Positions 42,122 through 64,000 of a DNA stretch of 64,000 nt are shown piece after piece. Under the pieces are notes generated by a model. That model ran no database searches, was not told where the DNA came from, and saw only the letters and a list, made by a program, of their open reading frames with translations. The translations under genes were made by a program, and so were the position numbers. This DNA is from Salpingoeca rosetta (taxonomy: Eukaryota; Protista; Choanoflagellata), in assembly GCA_033442325.1 (NCBI GenBank), contig JAWQFM010000005.1, positions 1,675,665 to 1,739,664 on the forward strand, written 5' to 3'. Position 1 is the stretch's first letter. Each line of letters starts with the position of its first letter.

Positions 42122-45100
42122 TCATCTCGTTTCAAACGCACCATCATCAAACAGCTCGCTGACGAGGCCTTCCTCTTCCTGCGCAGGGGCGTCGCCAATG
42201 TCGTAGTCCGGGTCCGTGTTCATCAGGCCCGTCGTGTCACCGGCAGAGTCGCCCTCAGCGGTGGCCATGTCGTACGCAGGGTCGCGCTCGCCGCTCTCCT
42301 CTGCGCCGGGTGCCTCGTTGCCGAGGTCGTAGTCTGGCTCGTCGAAGCTTGGCAGCGCGCCCAGCACATCGCCATCCCCTTGGTCGTACACAGGCTCGGG
42401 CTCCGACCCGCGGCGCCGCGAACCGTTGCCGCCAAGGTATTGTGGCTCTGCACCATCATCATCGCCGTCATCGTTCAGCCCAGAGGTAAGCATCGTGCGC
42501 ACATCGTACGTCCCGGAGGGCAGTGTGTTGTCGTAGTCTGGCCCGCCGTCCTCCTCCTCGTCGGAGAGGCCGAGGTTGTTGGCGCTGTCGTAGTCGTCGT
42601 CGTCGTGCTCGCCAGGCATGCCTGGTGCGGCGTTGTCGTAGTTGGGCTCACGCACCGACGCCTTGTTGGCGCGCGAGTACATGGCCTCAATCTCCTTCTT
42701 GGACTTGCCACGGCGCACCGCGTTCTGCGTGTCGGCGTCTGCCATGTCGTACGTGGCCTCCTCGTCCGCGAAGTCTTCGAGGTCATCCAGTGCAGCAGGG
42801 TTGCTGGCAAAGGCATACGTGTCCTGCACGCCGCCTTCTCCGTCGCCCTCGTCGTACACGGGCTCGCCAAAGCCGTCGCTGCTGCCGACATCGTACATGC
42901 GCTCGGGCTCGTCACCCATGTTGGCCGTGGAGTATGTCTCATCGTTGTCGTCGTCGCCGCTGAAGGCGCCCATGTCGTACACAAACGCGTTGTCGCGGGC
43001 GCCGCCACGCTGCATCTGCGACTTGCGCATGGTCACGCGGCGCGCCAGGAAGCGCTCCGCCTGCGCAAACGTCAGCGGGCTCACGCTGCCGTCGACAGCA
43101 AACTCGTCGTCCTCAAACTCGCCGCGCAGCAGGCTGGCGTCCTCGTACGCGGGCTCCTCCACCTGGCCCGTAATCGGGTCCAGGTACGCCGCCCAGCGCT
43201 TCGGGATGAGCCCAGAGGCGTCGTTGGGCACGTTGGCGCGGTACGGGCGCGTGCCGTTGCTCTGCTCCTTGGCGGCCGTGTCGATGGCCTCCTCCATGAC
43301 CAGGTCCGCCAGAGCCAGGCTCAGGAAGTCCACCACCTCGTCGAGCGAGCGCTCGTTCTCGGAGACCTTGGCCTCCATGAACATGTTTGTGTCATCCTTG
43401 AGCGTGGGCAGCGTGCGCTTGGGCGGGCGCGGCACCATGAGAATGTCGTACACCGTGCCCAGCTCCTCCGCAGGCTCCGTCAGCACGAGGTCCTTGTTGT
43501 AGCGCAGGAACGAGAAGCACACCACGCGCTTGAACGCCGCCAGGTACTGCGACGCCGGCGCAAACACGGGGTTGCGCATGCTGGTGAGCATGCCGCTGAA
43601 TGGATCCTGCTCGTACTTGACCAGCGCCTCAGACTTGTCGCGGCTGCGGCGGCGAAGCGACGTCACCGCCAGCACCGCCAGCACCAGCAGCGCAAGGCCG
43701 CCCAGCACGCCGCCGACAATGATGCCCAGCGACTCGCCAGTGGCGCTGCTCTGCTGCTGCTGCCGCGACTGCAGGTTGTCCAGGTCCTCGGCCACCGTCG
43801 CCGGGTCGGAGCAGTACGAGCCCGTGTCCGGCAGCGTCTGCAGGGAGCAGGACAGGAAGGTAAAGCCGTCGCAGCACCCACACGCCTGGCCCAACGCACA
43901 CTCGCAGCGGATGCCGCCGGCGTCATTCACACACTGCGAGCCCGGCGCGCACGGGTTCTGATCGCCGAGCAAACCGCACGCGTCGGCATACTCGCACATC
44001 GTGCCCGTGAATCCCGGAGGGCAGTTGCACACAAAGGTGAGCAGCTGCGTGGAGCTGACGCACGTGGCGTTGTTCTGGCAGGGGTCGTTTGCACAGTAGT
44101 CGATGAGGGAGCACTCGCGGTCAGACGTGGCCGTGGGCGCCGCCGTCTCCTCAAAGCCCGGGTCGCACTCGGACACGGGCAGACACACGCGGTCCGTGGT
44201 CAGGGTGAGGGGCACGCTCTCGTACATGTTGTAGTCGCAGGGCGCGTCGAGGCGGCACACGCGGTCCGAGGTGGGCGTGGGCTCCAGCAGCGCAATCTCG
44301 CCCTCCAGGCACACGGTGACGTTGGTGCACGTGCGGTCGGCCGTGGCGTTGCCGGCAGACGACTGGTACTCGACGGGCACGTTGCACACGGTGCGGTTCA
44401 CGCACTCGCGGTCCGTGGTTGCCGTGGGCGCCTCCGTCTCGTACTCCTCTGCGTCGCAGGTGCTGATGGGCATACACTCGGCGCTGGACGTGGCTGTCGG
44501 GGCCGCCGTCTCGTACTCGGATGCCGTGCACGAAGTTGTGGCGTGGCAGCTCGCCGTCGCCTGCTCGTTGGTGAACGTGGCAAACGGGTTGTAGCCGGCC
44601 GTGCGCACAAACTGGAACGGCGGCATCGTTGGCACCGTCAGCTCAAAGTCGTACCCGGCAAAGTTGAAGGGCGGCACGCGCGGGCCGCTCCAGGTGAAGC
44701 TGAGCGCGTCGGTGCTCACGCCAACAAAGCCGCCGCTGCCGCTTGTGGTGTTGACGCTGGTCAGCTGGAACACGGTGATGCCGTGCATGTCCTCCGAGGC
44801 AATGGGGGTGCGCACGACGACACCGTACACGTCGCCGCCGAGGTGCGCCGCCTGCCACAGGCCACCCTGCAGCGAGCTCGAGCCCTTGTCCACGTTGATG
44901 CGCTGGCCAACCTCGACCACAGACGCATCAAACAGGGTGTCAAAGCCAGCGGACATGGACTCCACGTCAAAGAAGACGTGCGTCGAGCCGGGCAGGGCGG
45001 GCACGTTGCCGGCGCCAAACACGCGCACCGCAACCTCGAGGCGGCAGCCGTTGCTCGTGTCCACGGGCTGAACCATGACGTCGCGCACAAAGCGCACGTC

Positions 45101-48100
45101 CTTGGAGAGCACGCGGGACAGGAGATCCACGTCCAGAACGCCGATGGTGCCGTCCTGGTCCGCATCGAGCTGCTCCTGCTGTACAGGAAGCAGCGTGCTG
45201 AAGTAGTTGGGGTCAAGCAGCGTCTCGAGGTACGCGTCCATGAAGAAGGTGACGTCGTCGAGGGTGAACACGCAGTCGGCGTTGACATCGCCTGTCTGGT
45301 GCGTGTCGCCGTTCGGGCACACGGCGCACGGCGGGGTCGGGCAGGCCGTGGTGGCCACGTCACGACGACGGCGGCGGCGGCGACGGTTCATCACCGAGGG
45401 CGCCTCAATCACCGTGGAGATGGACGCGGCGGGTGAGACGATGGGCGTGGACTCGGACGCACCCACGGCAATGGCGCCGCCTGCGCGGGAGGTGAAGGCA
45501 GCCACGCGGCCAGCGAAGAAGACCTGCTCATCAGCCGTGTCGGCCTTGACGGTGAAGGTGATGGTGGCAATGTGGGGCACGCCAGACACGCCGGCGTTGG
45601 GCTCTGCGGTCACGCGCACAAAGTGCGTGGCAAAGGCGGCCTGCTCCTCCTGCGGCAGCGTGGACGAGAAGGCGTTCACGGCCCCAACAAAGTCCGAGCC
45701 GGCGCCCGCCGTGACAAAGTCCACGAGCGACGCGTTGAAGAGGACGTCAAACACGAGGCGGTCAATGTCCGCGGAGCCGGCGTTGGCGCGCACCTCAAAG
45801 CTGAGCAGCGAGCCCGCGGTGGCGCCGGACAGGGCAAGCCCGCTGTTGACGCCAAAGTCCACCTCGCCCTCGGCAGGCAGCAGGTTACAGGCAAACGAGG
45901 CCTCTGCCAGGACCACGGGCGACGTAGCGTCCACGGTGACCAGGAAGAGCGACAACCTCTCGACGCTGTTGCCGAGCAGGCGCACCTCGCCCGTGGCTGC
46001 GCTCAGCAAGCTGGCAGATGCACCGGTCGCGCCAAGCGGCGCCGGCTCCTCCAGCATAAACTCAACCAGGCCGGCAGGCAGGACCGCGGCGCTGTCGAAG
46101 ACGCTGCTGTCCGAGAAGGTGACGGCAGCCTCTGGCGTGACGGACGTCGTCTGCGCGAGTCCACGCAGCTGCGAGGGGAAGGTGAGGGTGGCGCTGGCAA
46201 CGGACACCGGCGTCGAGGACACGGTGAGCGTGAGCTGCGTCGTCACACCGACAACGGAGACGTCCACGGCGGCCTGGCCAAGCACGGGCGATGTCGGGCT
46301 GGCCACGGAGACGATCGTGCCCGTCACGGCAAGCGCACCGCTGACGGCAGAGATGGTTGCGCTGGCAGCCACGTCGTCGGTGGTCTGCACGGCCGTGGCG
46401 CCGCCATCTGTGCTGAGCACACCGCGCACGTCCACGGCGCACGCCTGGAACGTGGCCGGGCTGAGGCCTTGGAAGGGCGCGAGTGAGGCAACCACGCCAG
46501 CCTCGGCCTGTGACGTGTGGCCGTTGGCGTGCAGGCGGCATGTGACGTGCAGGGCGGCAACATCCACGACGGAGATGCTGATGTTGGTGCTGGCCGTCTC
46601 GTAGGTGACCATGGCGTGGTACACGCCCGGCGCGGCGCCGCTGGCCACTGTGACGAGGAGACCCGTCGACGTCTCCGTGACAGCCAGCTCGGAGGGCGAC
46701 ACAATGTCGAGGCTGTCTGTCTCGTCGAGGTCCAGGCGGGCGCCGCCGGTGAGCGTGGCGGTGAGCAAAACGGGCGTGGAAGACGCGTGCATGAACGGCG
46801 CGGCCGCTGCAGCGCTGTCCGGGGCAGCAAGCACGGTGCGCTCCGTGGACGCGGCAATGCTGGCGACGGTGGGCAGGCTCAGCGACACGGGCACGGCGCG
46901 GGAGATGATGGGCTGCGCAGCACAGGCGCCCGACGACCAGGACGCGTCAAGCACGGGCACGCTGGCCGTCTGCACCTGGGAGCGAACCACGAGGGCCAGA
47001 CCTTGCACCTCGATAACCTCCGCGTCATCGGAGACGAGGCGCACGCCATCGGCTGCGGTAAGCTCCAAGCGGGTGGCGTCCGACAGAACGACGCTGGCGC
47101 CAACGGGCGCGTGCTGGTTGGTGGCGGTGAAGGTGCTGGAGACCTGCAGCGTGGCAGCGAGGGCGGCCTGCGACGCAAGCTCCGAGGGCAGGGCAGGGGA
47201 GAAGCCCAGGCTGACCACGGGGGTGATGTCGAGGCGGGTGGCGACGACGGGGGTGCTGGACACGACCACGGAGACGGAGGAGGCAAGGCCTTGCACGGTG
47301 GTCGACACCTGCACGGTGCCTGGCTGGAAGCCCTGCACATACACGCCGGCAAAGTCGTGGCCGGCGTGCGTGGGTGTGGACAGCGTGGCCACGCCGTCGT
47401 TGCTCACGTGCATCGTCACGTATTTGGTCACATCAATGTTGTCAACCACGAGGCCGCTGTCGTCGGAAAAGCTGGTAAACGCGCGCACGCGGGTCTTCTG
47501 GTACAGCTGGCGGCAGTTGCTCGACTCGTCCAGCCAGCCGGTCACGGCGTTGAGCTCGGCGTCATCCACAGTCAGCTGCACAGGCAGGGCAGGGCGCAGC
47601 ACGCGCACGTCAAAGGCGGTGGTCACGCCGGCGTCGGCATCGAGCGTCACGGTGATGGTGGCGGCGTAGGCGTTGAGGTCGCTGGAGGCGCCCAGCTTGA
47701 GGTGGCACGTGGGGGTGACGTCCACGACGGCCGGGTGCGAGGAGGAGCAGGTGACGTCGGCCGCATCCAGGGCCTCCAGGCCGCCAGACTCGCGCATGGT
47801 GAACAGCTCCACGTGGTGCAGGGCAGCCACGCCAGAGATGGTGGGCGTGTATGCGAGGAGCGTGGAGACGGGGGCGGCGAAGATGCTCTGGCTCTGAGCG
47901 CCGCTGACGGTGACAACGCCCTGGTTGGTGGCGTCCGCGCCCTGGCGGTCGACAAACACGACGCGGGCCGGCAGCGCGCGGTCACCAGGGCGGATGCCCT
48001 CGCCCTTGGCGTTGTCCAGCGAGTGCAGGATGATGTCGATACTGGCCTGGCCAGGGGTGGCGCTCGCAGGCACGGAGACGCTGATGGTGAAGAGGAGCTG

Positions 48101-51100
48101 GTCGCCGCCCGCTGGCCCGGAGAGGCGGGCAGAGGCAGAGGCAATGCCCAGCACGGCTGCGGAGGTGGTGGAGGGCGCCTTGCTGGTGCCGGTCCACGAG
48201 GCAAAGTCGAGGCCGAGGCTGTTCACGCGCAGGCGCGAGTCGTCCGAGGTGGTGACGACGGCGGCGAACGAGGCAATGGGGAACGCGGTGCGTGAGAGCA
48301 CCTCCAGCTCGAGCGTCTCGCCCGCGCGGACGTCCCGGTTGGGCAGGCGCACGTACACGTCGTTGTCTGGCACAAACACGGCCGAGGACGCAAGCGTCAC
48401 GAGACGGCTGGACTGACCCTGAACGGCGACGGCGCCCTGCAGCGCGGCCTCCTGGAAGGCGAACGTCACATTGGCCGTGGCGTCCACGCCGGGCGTGTAC
48501 CAGCCCCTCGGCACGCGCAGCGCAAAGGAGCACAGCCCGTGGGCGTTGGTGGTGCAGGAGACGGAGGTAGCGTTTTCGGCGTCGAGGCGGACGGTCACGT
48601 CCATGGCCGTGGCGCGGGGCACCACGTTGGCTGGCGTCGAAACCTGCAGCACACCGCGGACCCACGGGTCGTCCTCGTAGATGGTGCCTGCGGCGGCGAG
48701 CTCAAAGCGCACAGCCGCCGGCGCTGGGCGGGTCGTCTCGAGCGAGGCCGAGGTGGACGCCTCGCCAACAGAGGCGGAGAACACGGGGCCCGTGCCCTCC
48801 TCGCCGTTTGTGGTGCCCTGGAGCAGGACGGCGGTCTGGGCAGAAGTGCTCTCTGCGTATGTGGTCTCGGACGTCAGCGCAAGGCCGCCAGAGGCAGAGA
48901 ATATGGCGAGCGGTGAAAGCGGGGGCAGGACCTGCTCCTCACACTGGCGGTTGCTCGTCGGCGTGGGTGCGACGCTCTCGTACTCCAGTGGCGAGCAGAC
49001 GGTGAGGGGCGCGCAGACGCGGTCACGCGCTGGCCCTGCGGGCACGCTCTCGTACTCTGTCTCCGGGTCACACACCGTGAGGCGCTGGCACACGCGGTTG
49101 GACGTCGTTGTGGGCGCAACAAGCTCAAACTCAGACGACGTGCACTGGCGCAGCGCGCTGCACACGCGATCGCTAGTGGCCGTGTGCGCGGTGCTGATGT
49201 ACTGCTGCGCCGTGCACGTGCTCAGGTCATCGCACTGCCTATCCGTGGTGGCAGTCGGGGCCACAATCTCGTATTGCACATCCGGGGTGCACATGGTGTG
49301 CTGCGTGCACACGCGGTCCTGGAAGCGCGTGGGCTCCTGCGACTCAAACTGGTCCAGGTCGCACGTCGTGTACGGCAGGCACTGCGTGTCGCTGGTTGCG
49401 CTGCACGTCTGCTCAATGTACTCTGTGACGTTGCACACGGTGCAGGGCAGGCACACGCGGTCGTCATGCGCCAAGCACGGCGAAGACTCAAACGTGCTGC
49501 CGTCAACGCACTGCGTGCATGCAGTGCATGTGGTGTCATCCGTCTCGCTGCATGCTGCTGAGGCGTACGTGTCTCCGCTGCACGTGCTGCACATGGCGCA
49601 GGTGGCATCCGCAGACGCCGTGCAGGGGGTCATCTCGTAGTGCGTGCCCCCAGGGCAATCCGTGCACGCCTCACACACCCTACATGCGAAGAATGCAGTG
49701 GACGAGGTGGAAGAAGTGTGGGAGGTGGAAGAAGGGTCAGAAACGCGACAGGAAGCGTTGTGTGTGTGTGGGTGTGTATGCGTGTGTGCGTGTGTGCGTG
49801 CAAGTGTGTGAAATAGGGCATGGAAATATGGGGATCGAAAGTGAACAGACATTGGTGCGCACGAGGGTGATGGCAAGCATAGAGATTGGGGGGGGGGGGA
49901 GCGCCAAAACCAATCACACCATCAACATCAGCAACAACCCAAAGGGGCATGGTTCAAATCAAACAAACAAACAAACACGCACGCTCTGACATGCCATGAC
50001 AAGCACCTGTTTGTTGTGGTTGTGGGAGCAACGGCCTCGAATTGAGTGGCAGTGCACACTGTCAGGTTGGCGCACACGCGGTCCGACACCCTGTCATCAT
50101 ACATTCCGTATTCCACGTCAAGGGTGAGAAGGGGTGTGTTTGCGTGTGTGGTTGTGTTTGGGTGAATGAATGCCTATGCATGTGTGTGCGCTTGTGCGTG
50201 ATGCAACCGCTGATGACGCAGGGCAAGATGCAACAGACTTCGAGTGAAGGAACAAAATCCATGTCACGTTTTATGTGTGCCCAACTTACGATGTGGGTGC
50301 GGTGACTTGGAACTGGGCTGCTGTGCAGTTTGTCCAGTAGATGCATTCACGGTCCGTTGAAGGCGTGGGTGCGCGTGCCTCGTACTGCTGCGCGCGGCAC
50401 GTCGTGAGCTGCGTGCACTCGCGGTCGCTGGTGGCCGTCGGCGCAGCACTCTGTGCACAAAGAAAGAGAAACGTAACCAAGGTGAGTGAGGGCATGTGGT
50501 GTCATGAATGCAAACAACAAGCACAATGGCAATTCACTGCAGGCACTTCGAGACACACACACACACACAAATTAACAAACACACACACACACACACGTAT
50601 TCCCTCGCAGACACGCAACAAACAAACACGCAGACGCACCTCGAATTCGTCCATGCTGCACGCGGCGCGAACGGTGGCGCATTGACGGTCCGTGGTGGCG
50701 GTGGGGGCACGAGTCTCGTACTCGTTGGCCTCGCACACCGTCAGGTTGCGGCACTGGCGATCAGACATGGTTGTGGGAGCAACCGTCTGGTACTGGGTGG
50801 CTGTGCACTGCGTCACGTTGGCGCAGACGGTGTTGCTGGTGGGCGTGTGCGGTTGGGCAACGTACTGCGTGCCTGATGCACACGTCGATGCTGTCATGCA
50901 GTCGTCCTGACCAGCGTCCTCCTTGAAGGTGCCCGCAGCACACACGGTGCACACGCGGTCGCTGGAGAGCGTGGGCTGCACAGACTCCTCTTCGCCGGCG
51001 GGGCAGTCCGACACGGCAACACACGCCGTGAGACCAGATGTCGGTGCAAACGAGACACCGCTACTGCAAGGGGTGCATGCCGTGCTGGGCAGCTGGTCGG

Positions 51101-59179: not shown

Positions 59180-62100
59180 TGCTCGCGAGGAAACACAAGG
59201 TCTCCACCCAAAAACTCACGGTGCAGACAGTGTCCTGTGTGCCATCACAGCCGCCCGTCTTGTACGTGCCCGTTGGGCATTGGCGGCATTGACGGCAAGT
59301 CTGGCTGGTGGTATCGCCAAAGTAGCCCGTGGGGCAGCCAGCAACACACTCCGTGCCAAGAAGGAAGAGCGGGCTGTTGCAGGAGGTGCAAGCAGTGGAC
59401 GTGGCGCCAACACAGTCGCGGCACGACGGGTGGCACAGCTCGCACTCGCCAGAGGCCGTGCTTGGGTAGAACCCGAGGTCGCATTCTGTCCGGCACTCGG
59501 TGCCACTGAGGAAGACGCCGCGCTCGCACGACGTGCAGTTGCTGGCGGAGGGGCCAGAGCAGGTCAGGCACTCCGGGTGGCAGGGCACGCACTGCGTTGT
59601 CTCGGTACCGCCGCATGTGCCGATGAGGACCTCGGTCGACAGGCACGCGTCTGCGGTCGTGCATGGCGTGCACACTGCGTCGGCGTTGGCGGAGCAAGGG
59701 GAAGACATGTAGTGGCCCTCTGGGCACGTCTGCGTGCAGTCGCGGCACACGGTGTTGGAGCCGCCGTTTGCAGAGCTGCACGCCCGCAACACATATTGGT
59801 CCTCGCCACACGTCGAGCACTCCTCGCAGGTGGGGTAGCTGCGGGTGCCGTTGCACGTTCCAGACAGATATATGTCGTTTTCGCACTCGGTCGTGCACGC
59901 CCGGCACACTGTGAAAAGAGAATACACACACACACATGTGGGGGTTGAGGTGGGTGGGGTGTGCGTAGATGTGCGTGCGTGGCAACGTGCGTTAACGTGT
60001 GTGAATGTGTGTTTGTGTGAGTGAACTGGACAAAGAAAGGTTGATGCAGCACATGTCAAACAGCACGACAACGCAAGCAACCCAGGTCAACCAAAATCAC
60101 GCACACGCACACGCACACACACGCATACACACACACGCACGCACACACACACACACAGAGACACACACGCACACAATCCGCATATGCAAGCATGCAAGGG
60201 CTGTCGTACCGGTTGAGGTGGTGACGGTGCACGTGCCGTCCAAATACTCGTTCTGTGCACAGGAGGTGGGGCAAGGCACACACGCCTGGCCTCCGGCAGC
60301 CTCCTTGTATGTGCCTGAAGGGCAAGGCACGCACGTGCGGTCCTCAGTGATGCACTCTCCAGTGAGCTGTTCGCCAGCGGGACAGGACGTCTTGCACATC
60401 GTGCACTCGCGGTCGTTGGAGGGTGTCGGTGTCACAGACTCAAACGACACGCCAGGGACGCACTCGGCGCTCCAGGGTTCGCACTGGGTGTTGGTGGCAC
60501 CCTGGCAGCCGCCCACTTTGTACGTGCCACCAGAGCAGGTCTTGCAGCGACGGCAGACGCCACCGGCAAAGTCCTTGAAGAAGCCGTCGGGGCACACGCT
60601 CACGCACTCCGAGTCGTGCAGCACCAAGGAGGCCGCCGTGTCGCAGGACGTGCACGTGTCACTGGTGCCGTTGCAAGTGAGGCAGTTGCTGGAGCACGCC
60701 TGGCACTCGCCGTCGACAGAGTACGTGCCGAGGGGGCACTCTGAAAGGCACGCGCCCTCGTGCAGGCTGGTGCCGGAGGGGCAGTCGGTGCAGCTCTCGG
60801 GACCGGGGCCGTCGCATGCCAGGCACGACGGGTGGCACGTCTGGCATTCTGGGGTGCTGGAGCCGCCGCACACGCCGTTGTCGAGGTACTCGTTGTCCTC
60901 GCAATCCTCCTCGGTTGTGCATGGCTCGCAGCGCGGGGCGTCGGTGGACATGGGGTTGCACTCGCCAACGAGGTACGAGCCAGCGTCGCACTCCGTGACG
61001 CAGTCGGCGCACTGGCGGTCGGCGTCGTCGGTGCAGTCGCTCACCAGGTACTGGCTTGTCGTGCACACGGTGCACTGCTGGCAGCGTGTGCGGGAGGTGC
61101 CGTCTGCACCGCCGCATTCGCCCGTGAGGAACGCGCCGGGGGCACACGTGTCGATGCACGGCTGGCAGCTGGGGCTGCTGGTGTCTGTGCCCATGGTGCA
61201 CAGGCCGTCAATGTACTCGGTGCCTTGCTCGCAGTCGGCATAGGTGGTGCACGCGCTGCACTCGCGGTTGCCCGTGACCTGGCACGGCGAGGAGATAAAC
61301 TGGCCGGCCTGGCAGGTGGCGCAAGGCGTGCACTCGTAGTTGGACGTGCCGCCGCACGTGCCGCTCAGGAAGTGGCCGCTCGGGCACGTGCTGGTGCACT
61401 GGGCACACTCAATGTCGTGCTTGGGGCTGCACGCGGCCGTCTGGTAGGAGCCAGCGGGGCACTGCTCTGTGCAGGGCGCGCAGAAGAAGGTGTTGGTGCC
61501 CTCGTCCTCGATCTTGAAGTAGCCGTCCTTGCACTCGCAGTCGGAAAGCTGGATGGAGCCAGCCTCGCTATACGAGTACACGGGGCAGCTGCGGCAGTCA
61601 TAGTTGTGCTTGGGGGTGCAGGAGCCCGTGGCGTACTCGCCCTCGCCGCAGCCGCACGGGAAGCAGGTGTCGGCAACGGGGGCGGAGCCGTCCTGGAACG
61701 TGCCGTCGGGGCAGGCCACGCACGGCAGCGTGCCCGTGGCAGAGGCCGTGCCCAGCGGACAGGGCACGGGGTTCACGGTGACGTACACCTTGGCCGTGGC
61801 AGAGCGCACGCCGTCCGAGGCAACCACCGCGAGCTGGTACTCCTGCTGCACGTCGTTGTTGAGCACCTCCGTGGTGACGATGACGCCGCTCGCGCCATCA
61901 ATGGCAAAGGGGACGTTCTGCGTGGCCAGGGAGTACACAATCATGGCGTTGGCGCCAGAGTCGGCGTCCGTGGCCTGCACCTGCAGCACGAGCGTGTTGC
62001 GCGGGCGGCCCTCGTCGACGGCCACCTGGTACAGCGACTGCGCAAACACGGGCGCGTTGTCGTTGACGTCAATCACGCTGACAACAATGTCGATGGCGCC

Positions 62101-63737
62101 GGTGAGGCAGGGGAGGCCAATGGCGCGTGCGGAGATGCGCAGCCTGTACGAGGAGACGAGCTCGTGGTCCAGCGGGCGCGCAATGGACACGGCGCCCGTG
62201 GTGGCGTCGATGGAAAACTGCTCGTCCGTGCGCCCCACGAGGCTGAACTCAAACACGGGCTGCGGGTCGGCGAGCTGCGTGGCCGGCGGCGTGAAGATGA
62301 CGGTGCCAACGGGGCGGTCCTCCGCCACCTGCACAACCGTGTCGGCAACACCGGGGAAGATGTCGCTGTACACGGTGAGCACAAAGTCCACGCCGGCCAA
62401 GGCGGCGTCCTCGTCATCGGCTGAGGCCGCGGGCACGTTGGCCTGCACCGCAATGTACACGGGGTCTGTGTCGTCTGGCGAGCGGTTCAGCGTGAGCCGC
62501 TTCAGCTCGTCCGTGCCCGTGACGGCAAAGTCATAGTCAAAGGGCGACGGGTGCTGGTTGTTGAAAGCGACGTACATGACAGCTGCGCCGCGCTCAGACT
62601 TGAGCTCGATGTTGAGGTTGGTGATCTGGCCGCAGAGCGGGCGGAAGAAGAGCGTCTCGCAGGGGCGGACAACAGAGGACACGGAGTCGCCGGCGGTGAG
62701 GACGGCGGGGGCGTCGCACGTGGTGGCGCTCATTGCGTCGACAATGTCGCCAATGAGGGAGAAGGAGCGCAGGTTGAACACGTGTCGCGCGTCCGGGTCG
62801 CTGGCAATGTCCTCCAGCTGCGACTGGGAGATGGAGGAGCCAACGCCAATGGCAAACACGTTGACGTTCTGGTCGTGCAGGATGGACGCCTCCGTGGCCG
62901 GGTCGTACGACGGCTGCGAGTTACCGTCCGTCAGCACAACCAGCACGCGGGGCACGCCCTCAGAGGCCGGGCGCATGCCGTTGGCCTCCGTGAGAATGTC
63001 CTGGCGCACGGCGCGCAGGCCAAGGGACGTGTACGTCTGGCCCTGCGGGTAGGGGATGTCGGCGATGGCGTCGCGAAGGGCGTCGCCGTCAAAGTGGTCG
63101 TTGAGGCGGATGTTGACGGTGGCGCCGCTGGCAAACGTGGCCACGGCCACGCGCGTGTCGTGCTCGCCAATGGTGAAGTAGGTGGTGACCTGCGACACAA
63201 ACGCCAGCACGCGGTCCTGGAAGGTGCCCGGCGCACCACCGAGCGCGGTGGACTCGATGGAGCCCGAGCCGTCGAGCAGAAACACGAGATCAAGGTTTTG
63301 GCGGCACTGGTCTGCAATCACAGACACGTACAGGGAGTCGCGGCTGGTGTAGGCGACGTAGTCAAAGCCGGCCTCAACAGCCAACCCGCCAAGCACACCG
63401 AGGCGGTCGCTGGCAAAGTCGTCCGGCACGCCCTCAATGGTGATGCGGGCGGCGCGGCCAACGTTGTGCAGCGAGGCCTTCGAGATGTCTGCTGGCGGCT
63501 CGACATACGCCTCCAGCACGCGCACGTAGGCGTCGTCGCCAAACACGCCGCGCACGACCGAGGCCAGCGTGGTGATGTGCCGGCGCAGGCGCTTGCTCAT
63601 GACGCTCGGGTCGCCGTTGGACGTCGGCGGATCGGGCTTGACTGTCTCCGTCGCCGTCAGGTGCTGCAGCGCTTTGAACTCGGGGCACTGCGGCAGAATG
63701 AACTCCAGAATCACGCCGCTCGCGTCAGCCTCGGGGC
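42122..63737 (-). CDS. Giant hedgling-type cadherin receptor (about 6,000 aa visible; 5' end probably outside the window): Hh-N, VWA, 2 cadherin repeats, TNFR/furin-like Cys repeats, TMEM132-like/cohesin, dockerin, EGF, TM, Tyr-rich tail
   Basis: Exons approx. 63737-60210, 59908-59220, 59019-58881, 58717-56643, 56409-(corrupt), 55686-54741, 54471-54328, 54117-52180, 51911-50640, 50450-50290, 50090-50006, 49679-42122; the junctions checked are phase-compatible. Continuity is unverified across 55.7-56.35 kb and the N gap. Confidence 0.8.
43655..43729 (-). other. Single transmembrane helix, preceded by EGF-like domains (~43900-44105)
   Basis: LGIIVGGVLGGLALLVLAVLAVTSL followed by RRRSR; upstream IDYCANDPCQNNATC...FVCNCPPGFTGTMCE. 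Confidence 0.9.
45110..45292 (-). other. Dockerin-type duplicated Ca2+-binding loop domain
   Basis: GDVNADCVFTLDDVTFF ... LDADQDGTIGVLDVDLL: two DxN/DxDGxxxxxD loop-helix repeats. Confidence 0.8.
45480..48900 (-). other. TMEM132-like region (cohesin plus Ig-like domains) followed by a second cohesin-like domain (~45480-45830)
   Basis: PALPVQLTVDDAELNAVTGW...CRQLYQKTRVRAFTSF...IDVTKYV...VATL...GFQPGTVQV resembles the TMEM132 conserved blocks ([20 protein letters not shown]...YQ...DVT). GSLLSFEVRANAG...LVFDVLFNASLVDFV...IATITFTVK fits a cohesin pattern. Confidence 0.7.
48945..61770 (-). repeat. Long coding array of ~25-45 aa Cys-rich repeats (TNFR-like, 'T-C-x3-Y-E-x2-P-T-x-T-S-D-R-x-C', furin-like 'CHPSC..C.G', ephrin-receptor-like 'C..G.FK')
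   Basis: Dozens of CxxC...PTxTSDRxC and CHPSC/CDPSC units in the translated exons. Confidence 0.88.
52428..52527. other. Assembly gap (100 N) with ~250 bp near-identical sequence on both sides (~52176-52427 vs ~52533-52787)
   Basis: Run of n. Both flanks contain cacacctggaagcctggggcgcag...cacggcggttggcgcg; the right copy has two 1-nt insertions close to the gap. Confidence 0.95.
61775..62340 (-). other. Two extracellular cadherin repeats
   Basis: VAEDRPVGT...FSIDATTG...LDHE...VIDVNDNAPVF; VDEGRPRNT...ATDADSG...FAIDGASGVI. Confidence 0.9.
62730..63295 (-). other. von Willebrand factor A domain with intact MIDAS
   Basis: LDLVFLLDGSGSI (DxSxS), TRVAVATF, GQTYTSLGL, VLVVLTDGNS, VFAIGVG, LEDIASDP. 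Confidence 0.92.
63320..63737 (-). other. Hedgehog N-terminal signalling (Hedge) domain
   Basis: ASG...FKAL...DPSVMSKRLRRHITTLASVV...VRVLEAY...SLHNVGRAARIT...LGVLGGLAVEAGFDYVAY...LYVSV aligns by eye with Shh DRLMTQRCKDKLNALAISV...LRVTEGW...SLHYEGRAVDIT...YGMLARLAVEAGFDWVYY...IHCSV. Confidence 0.9.
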
Positions 63738-64000
63738 CTGTTTGTTGGTTGGTTGGTTGGGCAGGGTGGATAGCGCATGTGTGGGTGTGCTTGAATGTGA
63801 GCGAGAGCGAGAACCATCGCGAGTTGGGGGAGGGGAAGGGGGAGTTCATCCCCCCCCCCTTCCTCGAATAGGGAGTGATGTAAGGGCAAGAGGCAACAGC
63901 GCTATGAAGGGACTGCGCACACGAGACGTTGACGATGTGCAAACCACAAAACCCAAGGCGCGTGCGCGGCGCCGTCATTCATGTGCGGACAGAAAAAAGT

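Follow-up and report, generated by a model that had tools for sequence, protein, structure and literature searches.

Cohesin and dockerin form a high-affinity, Ca2+-dependent pair of protein domains, in mechanical terms among the strongest known, which has been studied almost only in the cellulosomes of bacteria. Sites cut by furin are marked by the consensus RxxR, RxKR or RxRR. In Notch (S1/HD), FAT1 and the LAR-type phosphatases a furin-type cut is made in an exposed loop, and the halves of the protein stay together non-covalently, in Notch in a calcium-dependent manner. A locus in which features of these systems occur side by side is described here in the choanoflagellate Salpingoeca rosetta. 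A cohesin, a run of eight arginines (R8) and a dockerin follow one another within one open reading frame (ORF) of a hedgling-type gene, and the cohesin-dockerin pair apparently serves to join the parts of a eukaryotic receptor that a convertase would cut. The locus resides on the minus strand of a 64,000-nucleotide stretch of contig JAWQFM010000005.1 (assembly GCA_033442325.1), hereafter called the window, to which all nucleotide positions refer.

The closest relatives of the two domains are the type I cohesins and dockerins of bacteria and archaea, found in cellulosomes and, outside of them, in Clostridium perfringens and Archaeoglobus. The cohesin of S. rosetta features the same jelly roll (Z 12–15). 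The duplicated F-hand, in which loop positions 1, 3, 5 and 12 provide the ligands, is likewise shared with bacterial type I dockerins, and the profiles retrieve bacterial domains first. In contrast to the bacterial pairs, the S. rosetta modules are neighbours, arranged in a constant order within a single type I membrane protein of a eukaryote, candidate convertase sites lie between them, a Cys knot precedes the dockerin, and a beta-sandwich serves as its mount. Dockerins of the S. rosetta type also differ from bacterial ones in having a conserved Cys in the first calcium loop, and binding of cohesin to dockerin is, in this case, predicted.

The likeness to Notch S1/HD, FAT1 and the LAR-type phosphatases would be functional only, and no Pfam match to Notch, NOD, LNR, GAIN or SEA domains was found in ORF 42122..49876. 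Unlike the cut of Notch, the candidate cut of S. rosetta falls in between a pair of domains that are each autonomous and have bacterial homologues known to bind each other; in the family to which the locus belongs there may often be two cuts, which would excise a spacer. GAIN and SEA domains may likewise be compared, as cut-but-attached, membrane-near and potentially force-responsive joints. They are, however, autocatalytic, and are cut inside a single fold in which a strand stays embedded, whereas the S. rosetta motif would suit an external protease and resides in a predicted disordered linker.

Hedglings, coherins and lefftyrins, the choanoflagellate and sponge cadherins, and TMEM132 proteins are the protein families to which the S. 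rosetta ORF belongs. Cohesin domains are already known from the cadherins of choanoflagellates and sponges, hedglings among them, as is the TMEM132 module. For Pfam cohesin domains in proteins of choanoflagellates and sponges, the accessible part of PMC6030884 cites Abedin and King 2008, Nichols 2012 and Peer 2009. The same part of the paper assigns the TMEM132 module to hedglings as well, and reports that dockerin is not detectable in vertebrates; no dockerin partner or cleavage site beside the cohesin is described in it. The literature searched, outside whose coverage lay Nichols 2012 and Peer 2009, contained no link of cohesin-dockerin pairs with convertase cleavage in eukaryotes, and no cut-and-clasp model.

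The cohesin-dockerin cassette and its homologues

Cohesin, arginine run and dockerin, to which a first-pass annotation of the window had drawn attention, were all found where it had placed them, on the minus strand inside ORF 42122..49876. They are parts of a larger unit, the cassette, in which N-terminal extension strands, cohesin, linker, Cys knot, dockerin and a C-terminal beta-sandwich follow one another. Residue numbers of models and alignment columns refer to a 511-residue segment including the cassette (positions 44477–46009, minus strand, corresponding to ORF residues 1290–1800). The same residues were used as phmmer query against 1.84 billion representative proteins, and 174 of these matched at E≤1e-3. 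Most alignments span in one stretch the entire unit, from the cohesin through linker and dockerin to the next domain, and the order cohesin-polybasic site-dockerin is conserved. Among the copies of this conserved holozoan cassette, the locus represents that of the hedgling. Copy number per giant protein goes up to 4, some proteins having three or four cassettes. In full-length matches cohesin and dockerin are always neighbours, occur in fixed order, and are equal in number.

Homologues of named source all reside in choanoflagellates (S. rosetta, Choanoeca flexa, Barroeca monosierra, Hartaetosiga gracilis). The remaining ones derive mostly from metagenome or Logan contigs, and cluster look-ups confirmed no sponge or cnidarian copy among the named homologues. 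The S. rosetta protein PTSG_11806 is identical to the ORF across the studied segment (511/511 residues); a word-based homologue search with this region gave 4 proteins only, and no added taxa. When the 511-residue cassette was searched as a single sequence against the PDB, only a chance low-complexity match was obtained, and family profiles were needed. The family consensus comprises, in order, the cohesin end, RxRR, a variable spacer, a second RxRR, the knot CxxPPCxxC, the first calcium loop GDxNGDCxFDxxD, a gap, and the second loop LDxDxNGxxDxxD.

The cohesin was identified by both sequence profile and predicted fold. Pfam family Cohesin (PF00963) matches ORF residues 1353–1454 (nucleotides ~45515–45820). 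The isolated segment scores 26.1–26.4 bits against a cut-off of 24.1; within the whole ORF the score is 22.8 bits, slightly below the cut-off. PF00963 is matched by 43 of the 51 homologous segments (best E 1.3e-14), and the family profile, compared with the PDB, retrieves type I cohesins at E 3.6e-8, bacterial domains first. In the AlphaFold model of the cassette (mean predicted local distance difference test, pLDDT, 88.2; predicted template modelling score, pTM, 0.60) nine strands are found between residues 46 and 204. By VIA, this region superposes on the solved cohesin 2vo8 with Z 15.2 and a root-mean-square deviation of 2.2 Å over 131 of 135 residues. The top 17 VIA-align matches are cohesins without exception, and Foldseek agrees (TM 0.70–0.74, normalised to the target). 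The cohesin call of the first-pass annotation is upheld by the segment score and by this superposition.

The dockerin consists of a pair of F-hands, each of whose loops has calcium ligands in positions 1, 3, 5 and 12. Dockerin_1 (PF00404) is matched by 47 of 52 homologous segments (best E 3.1e-8). The family profile retrieves from the PDB type I dockerins first, over both repeats (E 7.3e-7 to 1e-3), and calmodulin-type EF hands rank below them. The aspartates that open and close each loop, at positions 1 and 12 (D241, D252, D282 and D293), are invariant in 51–53 sequences. Helices predicted by AlphaFold at residues 250–265 and 291–301 begin within the calcium loops, as in F-hands. The score of the S. 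rosetta sequence itself counts against the assignment, since it reaches 14.4–14.6 bits (E 0.04) and the Dockerin_1 cut-off is 22.9. The dockerin proposed in the annotation stands, then, on the family-level profile and the invariant calcium-loop aspartates, and not on the Pfam score of the domain itself.

Cysteines of the knot that precedes the dockerin are conserved to different degrees over the copies (C223 in 88%, C228 in 76%, C231 in 75%). Dockerin and following beta-sandwich were modelled with pLDDT 95 and pTM 0.91, and are predicted to make one rigid body. In the match lists obtained with this model by VIA and Foldseek, places are filled by the larger sandwich, not by the dockerin. The sandwich has no Pfam match, no Foldseek match at ≤1e-3, and a best VIA Z of 6.9 to generic FN3/Ig-like folds. 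It had been considered as a second cohesin or as an X-module, and both were rejected on account of this low Z and of the generic character of the folds matched.

Candidate processing motifs in the linker

In the AlphaFold model the pLDDT of the linker falls below 50 at residues 207–219. No RX[K/R]R motif other than R8 occurs among the 2584 residues of the ORF; R8 is directly followed by DV, and is located N-terminal of the transmembrane helix. Two metagenomic hedgling orthologues have R6 and KSRR, respectively, at the position of R8, and DV follows in each. The length of the arginine run is evolutionarily labile.

Linker motifs were counted in 117 full homologous cassette copies. RX[K/R]R is found in the linker of 87 copies and RXXR in that of 94; two separated sites occur in 50. 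Linkers missing these motifs have mostly KR or RR pairs instead. The density of RX[K/R]R clusters is 28.6 per 1000 linker residues versus 0.69 across whole proteins (~41-fold), and more than half of the clusters fall in linkers, which amount to 1.3% of the protein residues. As the ORF has RX[K/R]R nowhere but in R8, and the motif is enriched in the 117 homologous linkers, the polybasic run is beyond what chance would give. In comparisons among the copies, the cleavage motif is the most conserved linker feature. The polybasic site singled out by the first-pass annotation is accordingly found conserved family-wide, in a linker predicted to be disordered.

Family linkers have a median length of 38 residues, and the last basic site is usually found 2–4 residues ahead of C223, the first Cys of the knot. 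The hedgling copy, which resides in a Hedgehog-N/cadherin/TNFR context, has one fused R8 site in a linker of 18 residues; many copies of the family have two sites around a spacer. The two family sites have collapsed into a single fused one in the hedgling lineage. Two kexin-like convertase genes are reported for Monosiga brevicollis, a choanoflagellate other than S. rosetta (bioRxiv 10.1101/802215). As this layout is common to ~200 related copies, the protein is probably cut at R8.

A proposed cleaved and clasped joint and its alternatives

In the mechanism that we propose, a kexin/furin-type proprotein convertase would cut after the arginine run, before DVATT, in the secretory pathway. The N-terminal chain would be a large ectodomain with TNFR repeats and TMEM132-like immunoglobulin (Ig) domains, ending in the cohesin, and probably would also include the Hedgehog-N, VWA and cadherin domains encoded upstream. 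The C-terminal chain, anchored in the membrane, would have the Cys knot at its start, followed by the dockerin, rigidly mounted on the beta-sandwich. The two chains would stay together non-covalently by means of a calcium-dependent contact between cohesin and dockerin, and the joint could open by force or calcium loss. That the protein is cut in the secretory pathway and its chains held in this way we consider an even call; cleavage, contact in cis, and dependence on calcium or force are all what we infer, and the interpretation of a cleavable, clasped joint is partly supported.

The topology on which the first-pass annotation had built a similar scheme is as it described, with the cohesin on the ectodomain side and the dockerin on the membrane-anchored side, where a transmembrane helix spans ORF residues 2050–2074. 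The annotation spoke of a membrane-bound stub. This fragment is membrane-anchored, but is not small, as it comprises dockerin, beta-sandwich, TNFR repeats and an EGF domain (residues 1928–1958).

A number of observations weigh against the proposed joint, and are given here together with the alternatives that they favour. The codons of the run (CGT CGC CGC CGC CGC CGT CGT CGT) make up a CGY trinucleotide repeat, and the length of R8 may hence derive in part from slippage. One small subfamily, formed by proteins of ~7900 residues (P0027, P0061, P0072 and P0096), has linkers of 19–29 residues and no basic sites. Because this subfamily keeps both cohesin and dockerin, the module does not require cleavage, and the members of the subfamily may be uncut versions of the joint. 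At least one cassette of this subfamily has a degenerate second calcium loop.

The triplet repeat and the short-linker subfamily would both fit a protein that is not cut, in which the arginines would make up a linker of low complexity or one that binds polyanions (recognizing, for example, sulfated glycans), and cohesin and dockerin make a rigid single-chain joint. What is conserved is not net charge but the specific pattern, RX[K/R]R or dibasic, and the linkers concentrate more than half of the clusters in their small share of the residues. Moreover, the sites occupy two fixed positions, one after the last cohesin strand and the other shortly before the Cys knot, around a spacer which is variable, and this is the signature of processing sites. 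On these grounds an uncut linker is judged quite unlikely.

Contact between cohesin and dockerin was assessed by mean-field direct-coupling analysis. The top pair of the whole cassette is made by cohesin G127, in the beta5-beta6 loop, and dockerin F302, at the end of the last helix. Couplings between cohesin and dockerin reach 1.68 and 1.54, versus a maximum of 0.87 in the cohesin-sandwich control. Phylogenetically independent pairs were drawn on a tree built without the columns being tested; G127 and F302 change together in ~9 of 13 such pairs, and never in opposite fashion (p ~0.004). The two residues are also mutual best partners among 100 variable columns (z ~4.3). A second coupled pair, cohesin 84 and dockerin 243, was rejected, having p ~0.06 in independent pairs and not being made of mutual best partners.

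Based on this covariation, we claim that cohesin and dockerin are likely to be close to each other within the cassette. The same data include points that detract from the clasp: support comes from one strong pair only, and the analysis, made on 153 copies (~150 effective sequences), is noisy. Couplings do not map significantly to the canonical 8-3-6-5 face of the cohesin (p 0.06, residue level), and are not enriched at the canonical recognition positions of the dockerin (p 0.82). No canonical interface is therefore claimed.

AlphaFold does not place the cohesin with confidence relative to the dockerin, as pTM is 0.60 for the cassette versus 0.91 for dockerin plus sandwich. With respect to a clasp in cis, this modelling result is neutral to mildly negative. 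Absence of docking of the cohesin on its own dockerin would favour a protein whose ectodomain is released, or which matures, by the cut, and whose domains bind in trans, with partners including the ~20 other cassette proteins of the genome, in a cellulosome-like, combinatorial network at the surface or in the matrix. Such a network would be in line with the many proteins having several cassettes, and with the variation among paralogues of dockerin positions 10, 11, 17 and 18, which set specificity in bacteria. Bacterial cohesin-dockerin pairs, in addition, usually act between proteins, according to the part of PMC6030884 referred to above. Binding in trans is nevertheless considered unlikely. 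Constant adjacency, order and equal numbers of the two domains in full-length matches speak against it, and the covariation of G127 and F302 argues for pairing within the module. Proteins apparently made of the dockerin only (P0029, P0051 and P0071) were rejected, because they look like fragments and lack signal peptides.

A protein cut at R8 could finally be held by other contacts, either a disulfide involving C41 or an interaction of the cohesin with the beta-sandwich, the dockerin acting as a calcium-dependent stabiliser of the stub. Cohesins have at most one cysteine, C41, found in 51% of copies. As it is retained in the hedgling copy, a copy-specific disulfide is possible there, which is one more point against a purely non-covalent clasp. 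The tight integration of dockerin and sandwich in the model is in keeping with a stabilising role, as are the coupling signals detected inside the C-terminal fragment: C223-C246 and C322-C488 suggest disulfides that would tie the Cys knot to the dockerin loop and close the sandwich. The C-terminal side keeps, however, an even set of ~6 cysteines, with or without C41. A conserved disulfide across the site was rejected on these cysteine counts; since the C-terminal set is independent of C41, no conserved disulfide bridges the cut. Couplings of cohesin to sandwich are, as said, weak in comparison to those with the dockerin, and attachment by such other contacts appears very unlikely.

The hedgling gene and the significance of the proposed joint

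The coordinates of cassette and surrounding features are collected in Table 1. According to the first-pass annotation, the three elements are encoded by one uninterrupted exon, and transcript data agree. In 3 stranded RNA-seq runs the region 43200–48900 is covered ~5–40x, and reads reveal neither splice joints nor indels; the mRNA therefore contains the exon without interruption, and R8 is part of the message. First mates are nearly all on the plus strand, as expected of a minus-strand mRNA. Minority differences were seen in run X22, G>A at 46650 (8 of 33 reads) and C>A at 47167 (6 of 56), in reads starting in each case at only two places, and are probably duplicates or errors.

Table 1. Position of the cassette, its modules, and other features of the hedgling locus in the window
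Feature	Position	Strand	Based on
Entire conserved cassette, from N-terminal extension strands and cohesin through presumed cleavable linker and Cys knot to dockerin and C-terminal beta-sandwich	44540..45922	-	phmmer
Cohesin, nine-stranded jelly roll, ORF residues 1335-1493	45398..45874	-	Pfam, VIA, Foldseek
Linker, 18 residues, predicted disordered	45344..45397	-	pLDDT
R8 run, candidate kexin/furin-type cleavage site	45362..45385	-	sequence
Cys knot CxxPPCxxC, start of presumed C-terminal fragment	45305..45343	-	conservation
Dockerin, two F-hand calcium loops, helix after each	45095..45304	-	Pfam, family profile
Calcium loop 1 DVNADCVFTLDD	45254-45289	-	sequence
Calcium loop 2 DADQDGTIGVLD	45131-45166	-	sequence
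C-terminal beta-sandwich carrying the dockerin, no Pfam family	44555..45094	-	AlphaFold, VIA, Foldseek
Giant uninterrupted ORF, 2584 residues, last large exon of hedgling-type gene	42122..49876	-	ORF list, Pfam, RNA-seq
Transmembrane helix, ORF residues 2050-2074	43655..43729	-	read from translation
Acidic cytoplasmic tail, 510 residues, ORF residues 2075-2584	42125-43654	-	translation
Upstream ORF with HH_signal, VWA, cadherin, TNFR repeats; Hedgehog-N part of presumed same gene	60097..63978	-	Pfam

The ORF encodes, from the N-terminus, TNFR repeats, TMEM132-like Ig domains, the cassette, further TNFR repeats, EGF, the transmembrane helix and a cytoplasmic tail. Pfam matches are, besides Cohesin, TNFR_c6 repeats, TMEM132-type Ig domains at residues 676–958, and EGF at residues 1928–1958. 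The three TMEM132-type Ig domains (4th, 5th and 6th in Pfam; ~47003–47850, minus strand) lie N-terminal of the cassette, and ~330 residues separate the two modules in the same ORF (958 versus near 1290). The same mix of TMEM132-like module and cassette is found in the homologue P0013. In the acidic tail there are 13 x-Y-D motifs (for example PVYDEG, PDYDLG, PAYDMA and PDYDIG), an array which, by its sequence, looks like tyrosine phosphorylation or docking sites.

The ORF located upstream features HH_signal (E 1e-14), VWA (4.6e-40) and Cadherin (8.3e-29) domains, and further ORFs with TNFR repeats reside between the two, on the same strand. The domain layout across both ORFs corresponds, as deduced from translations, to the hedgling architecture, and the Hedgehog-N ORF and the cassette ORF likely encode a single polypeptide. 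The public model PTSG_11806 maps to 55689–41686 only, and omits the HH_signal/VWA/cadherin ORF. It begins partway through an array of TNFR repeats, and public annotation appears to have divided the hedgling gene. As to the description of the protein as a Hedgehog-domain receptor, made in the first-pass annotation, HH_signal lies upstream on the same strand, and the gene model, which begins at ~55689, is devoid of this domain. G+C content is ~53–60% in the part of the window at 1–42000, and 57–69% (mostly >62%) over the hedgling gene region, 42000–64000.

S. rosetta can be transfected and gene-edited, and the cut-and-clasp idea is therefore directly testable. By extension, the cassette could be a general holozoan cut-and-clasp joint, at which convertases would divide giant receptors for adhesion and signalling into chains held only by the calcium-dependent contact of cohesin and dockerin. 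In the hedgling, the Hedgehog-N ectodomain would be releasable or exchangeable by force or calcium loss, and a diffusible ligand of Hedgehog type could arise independently of Hint, by a route that predates animals. This wider picture is tentative, and we regard it as somewhat unlikely. If true, the cassette would represent a third independent design of a cut-yet-attached, force-sensing receptor, beside Notch S1/HD and GAIN/SEA. If true in the hedgling, it would bear on how membrane-bound Hedgehog-N first became a releasable signal.

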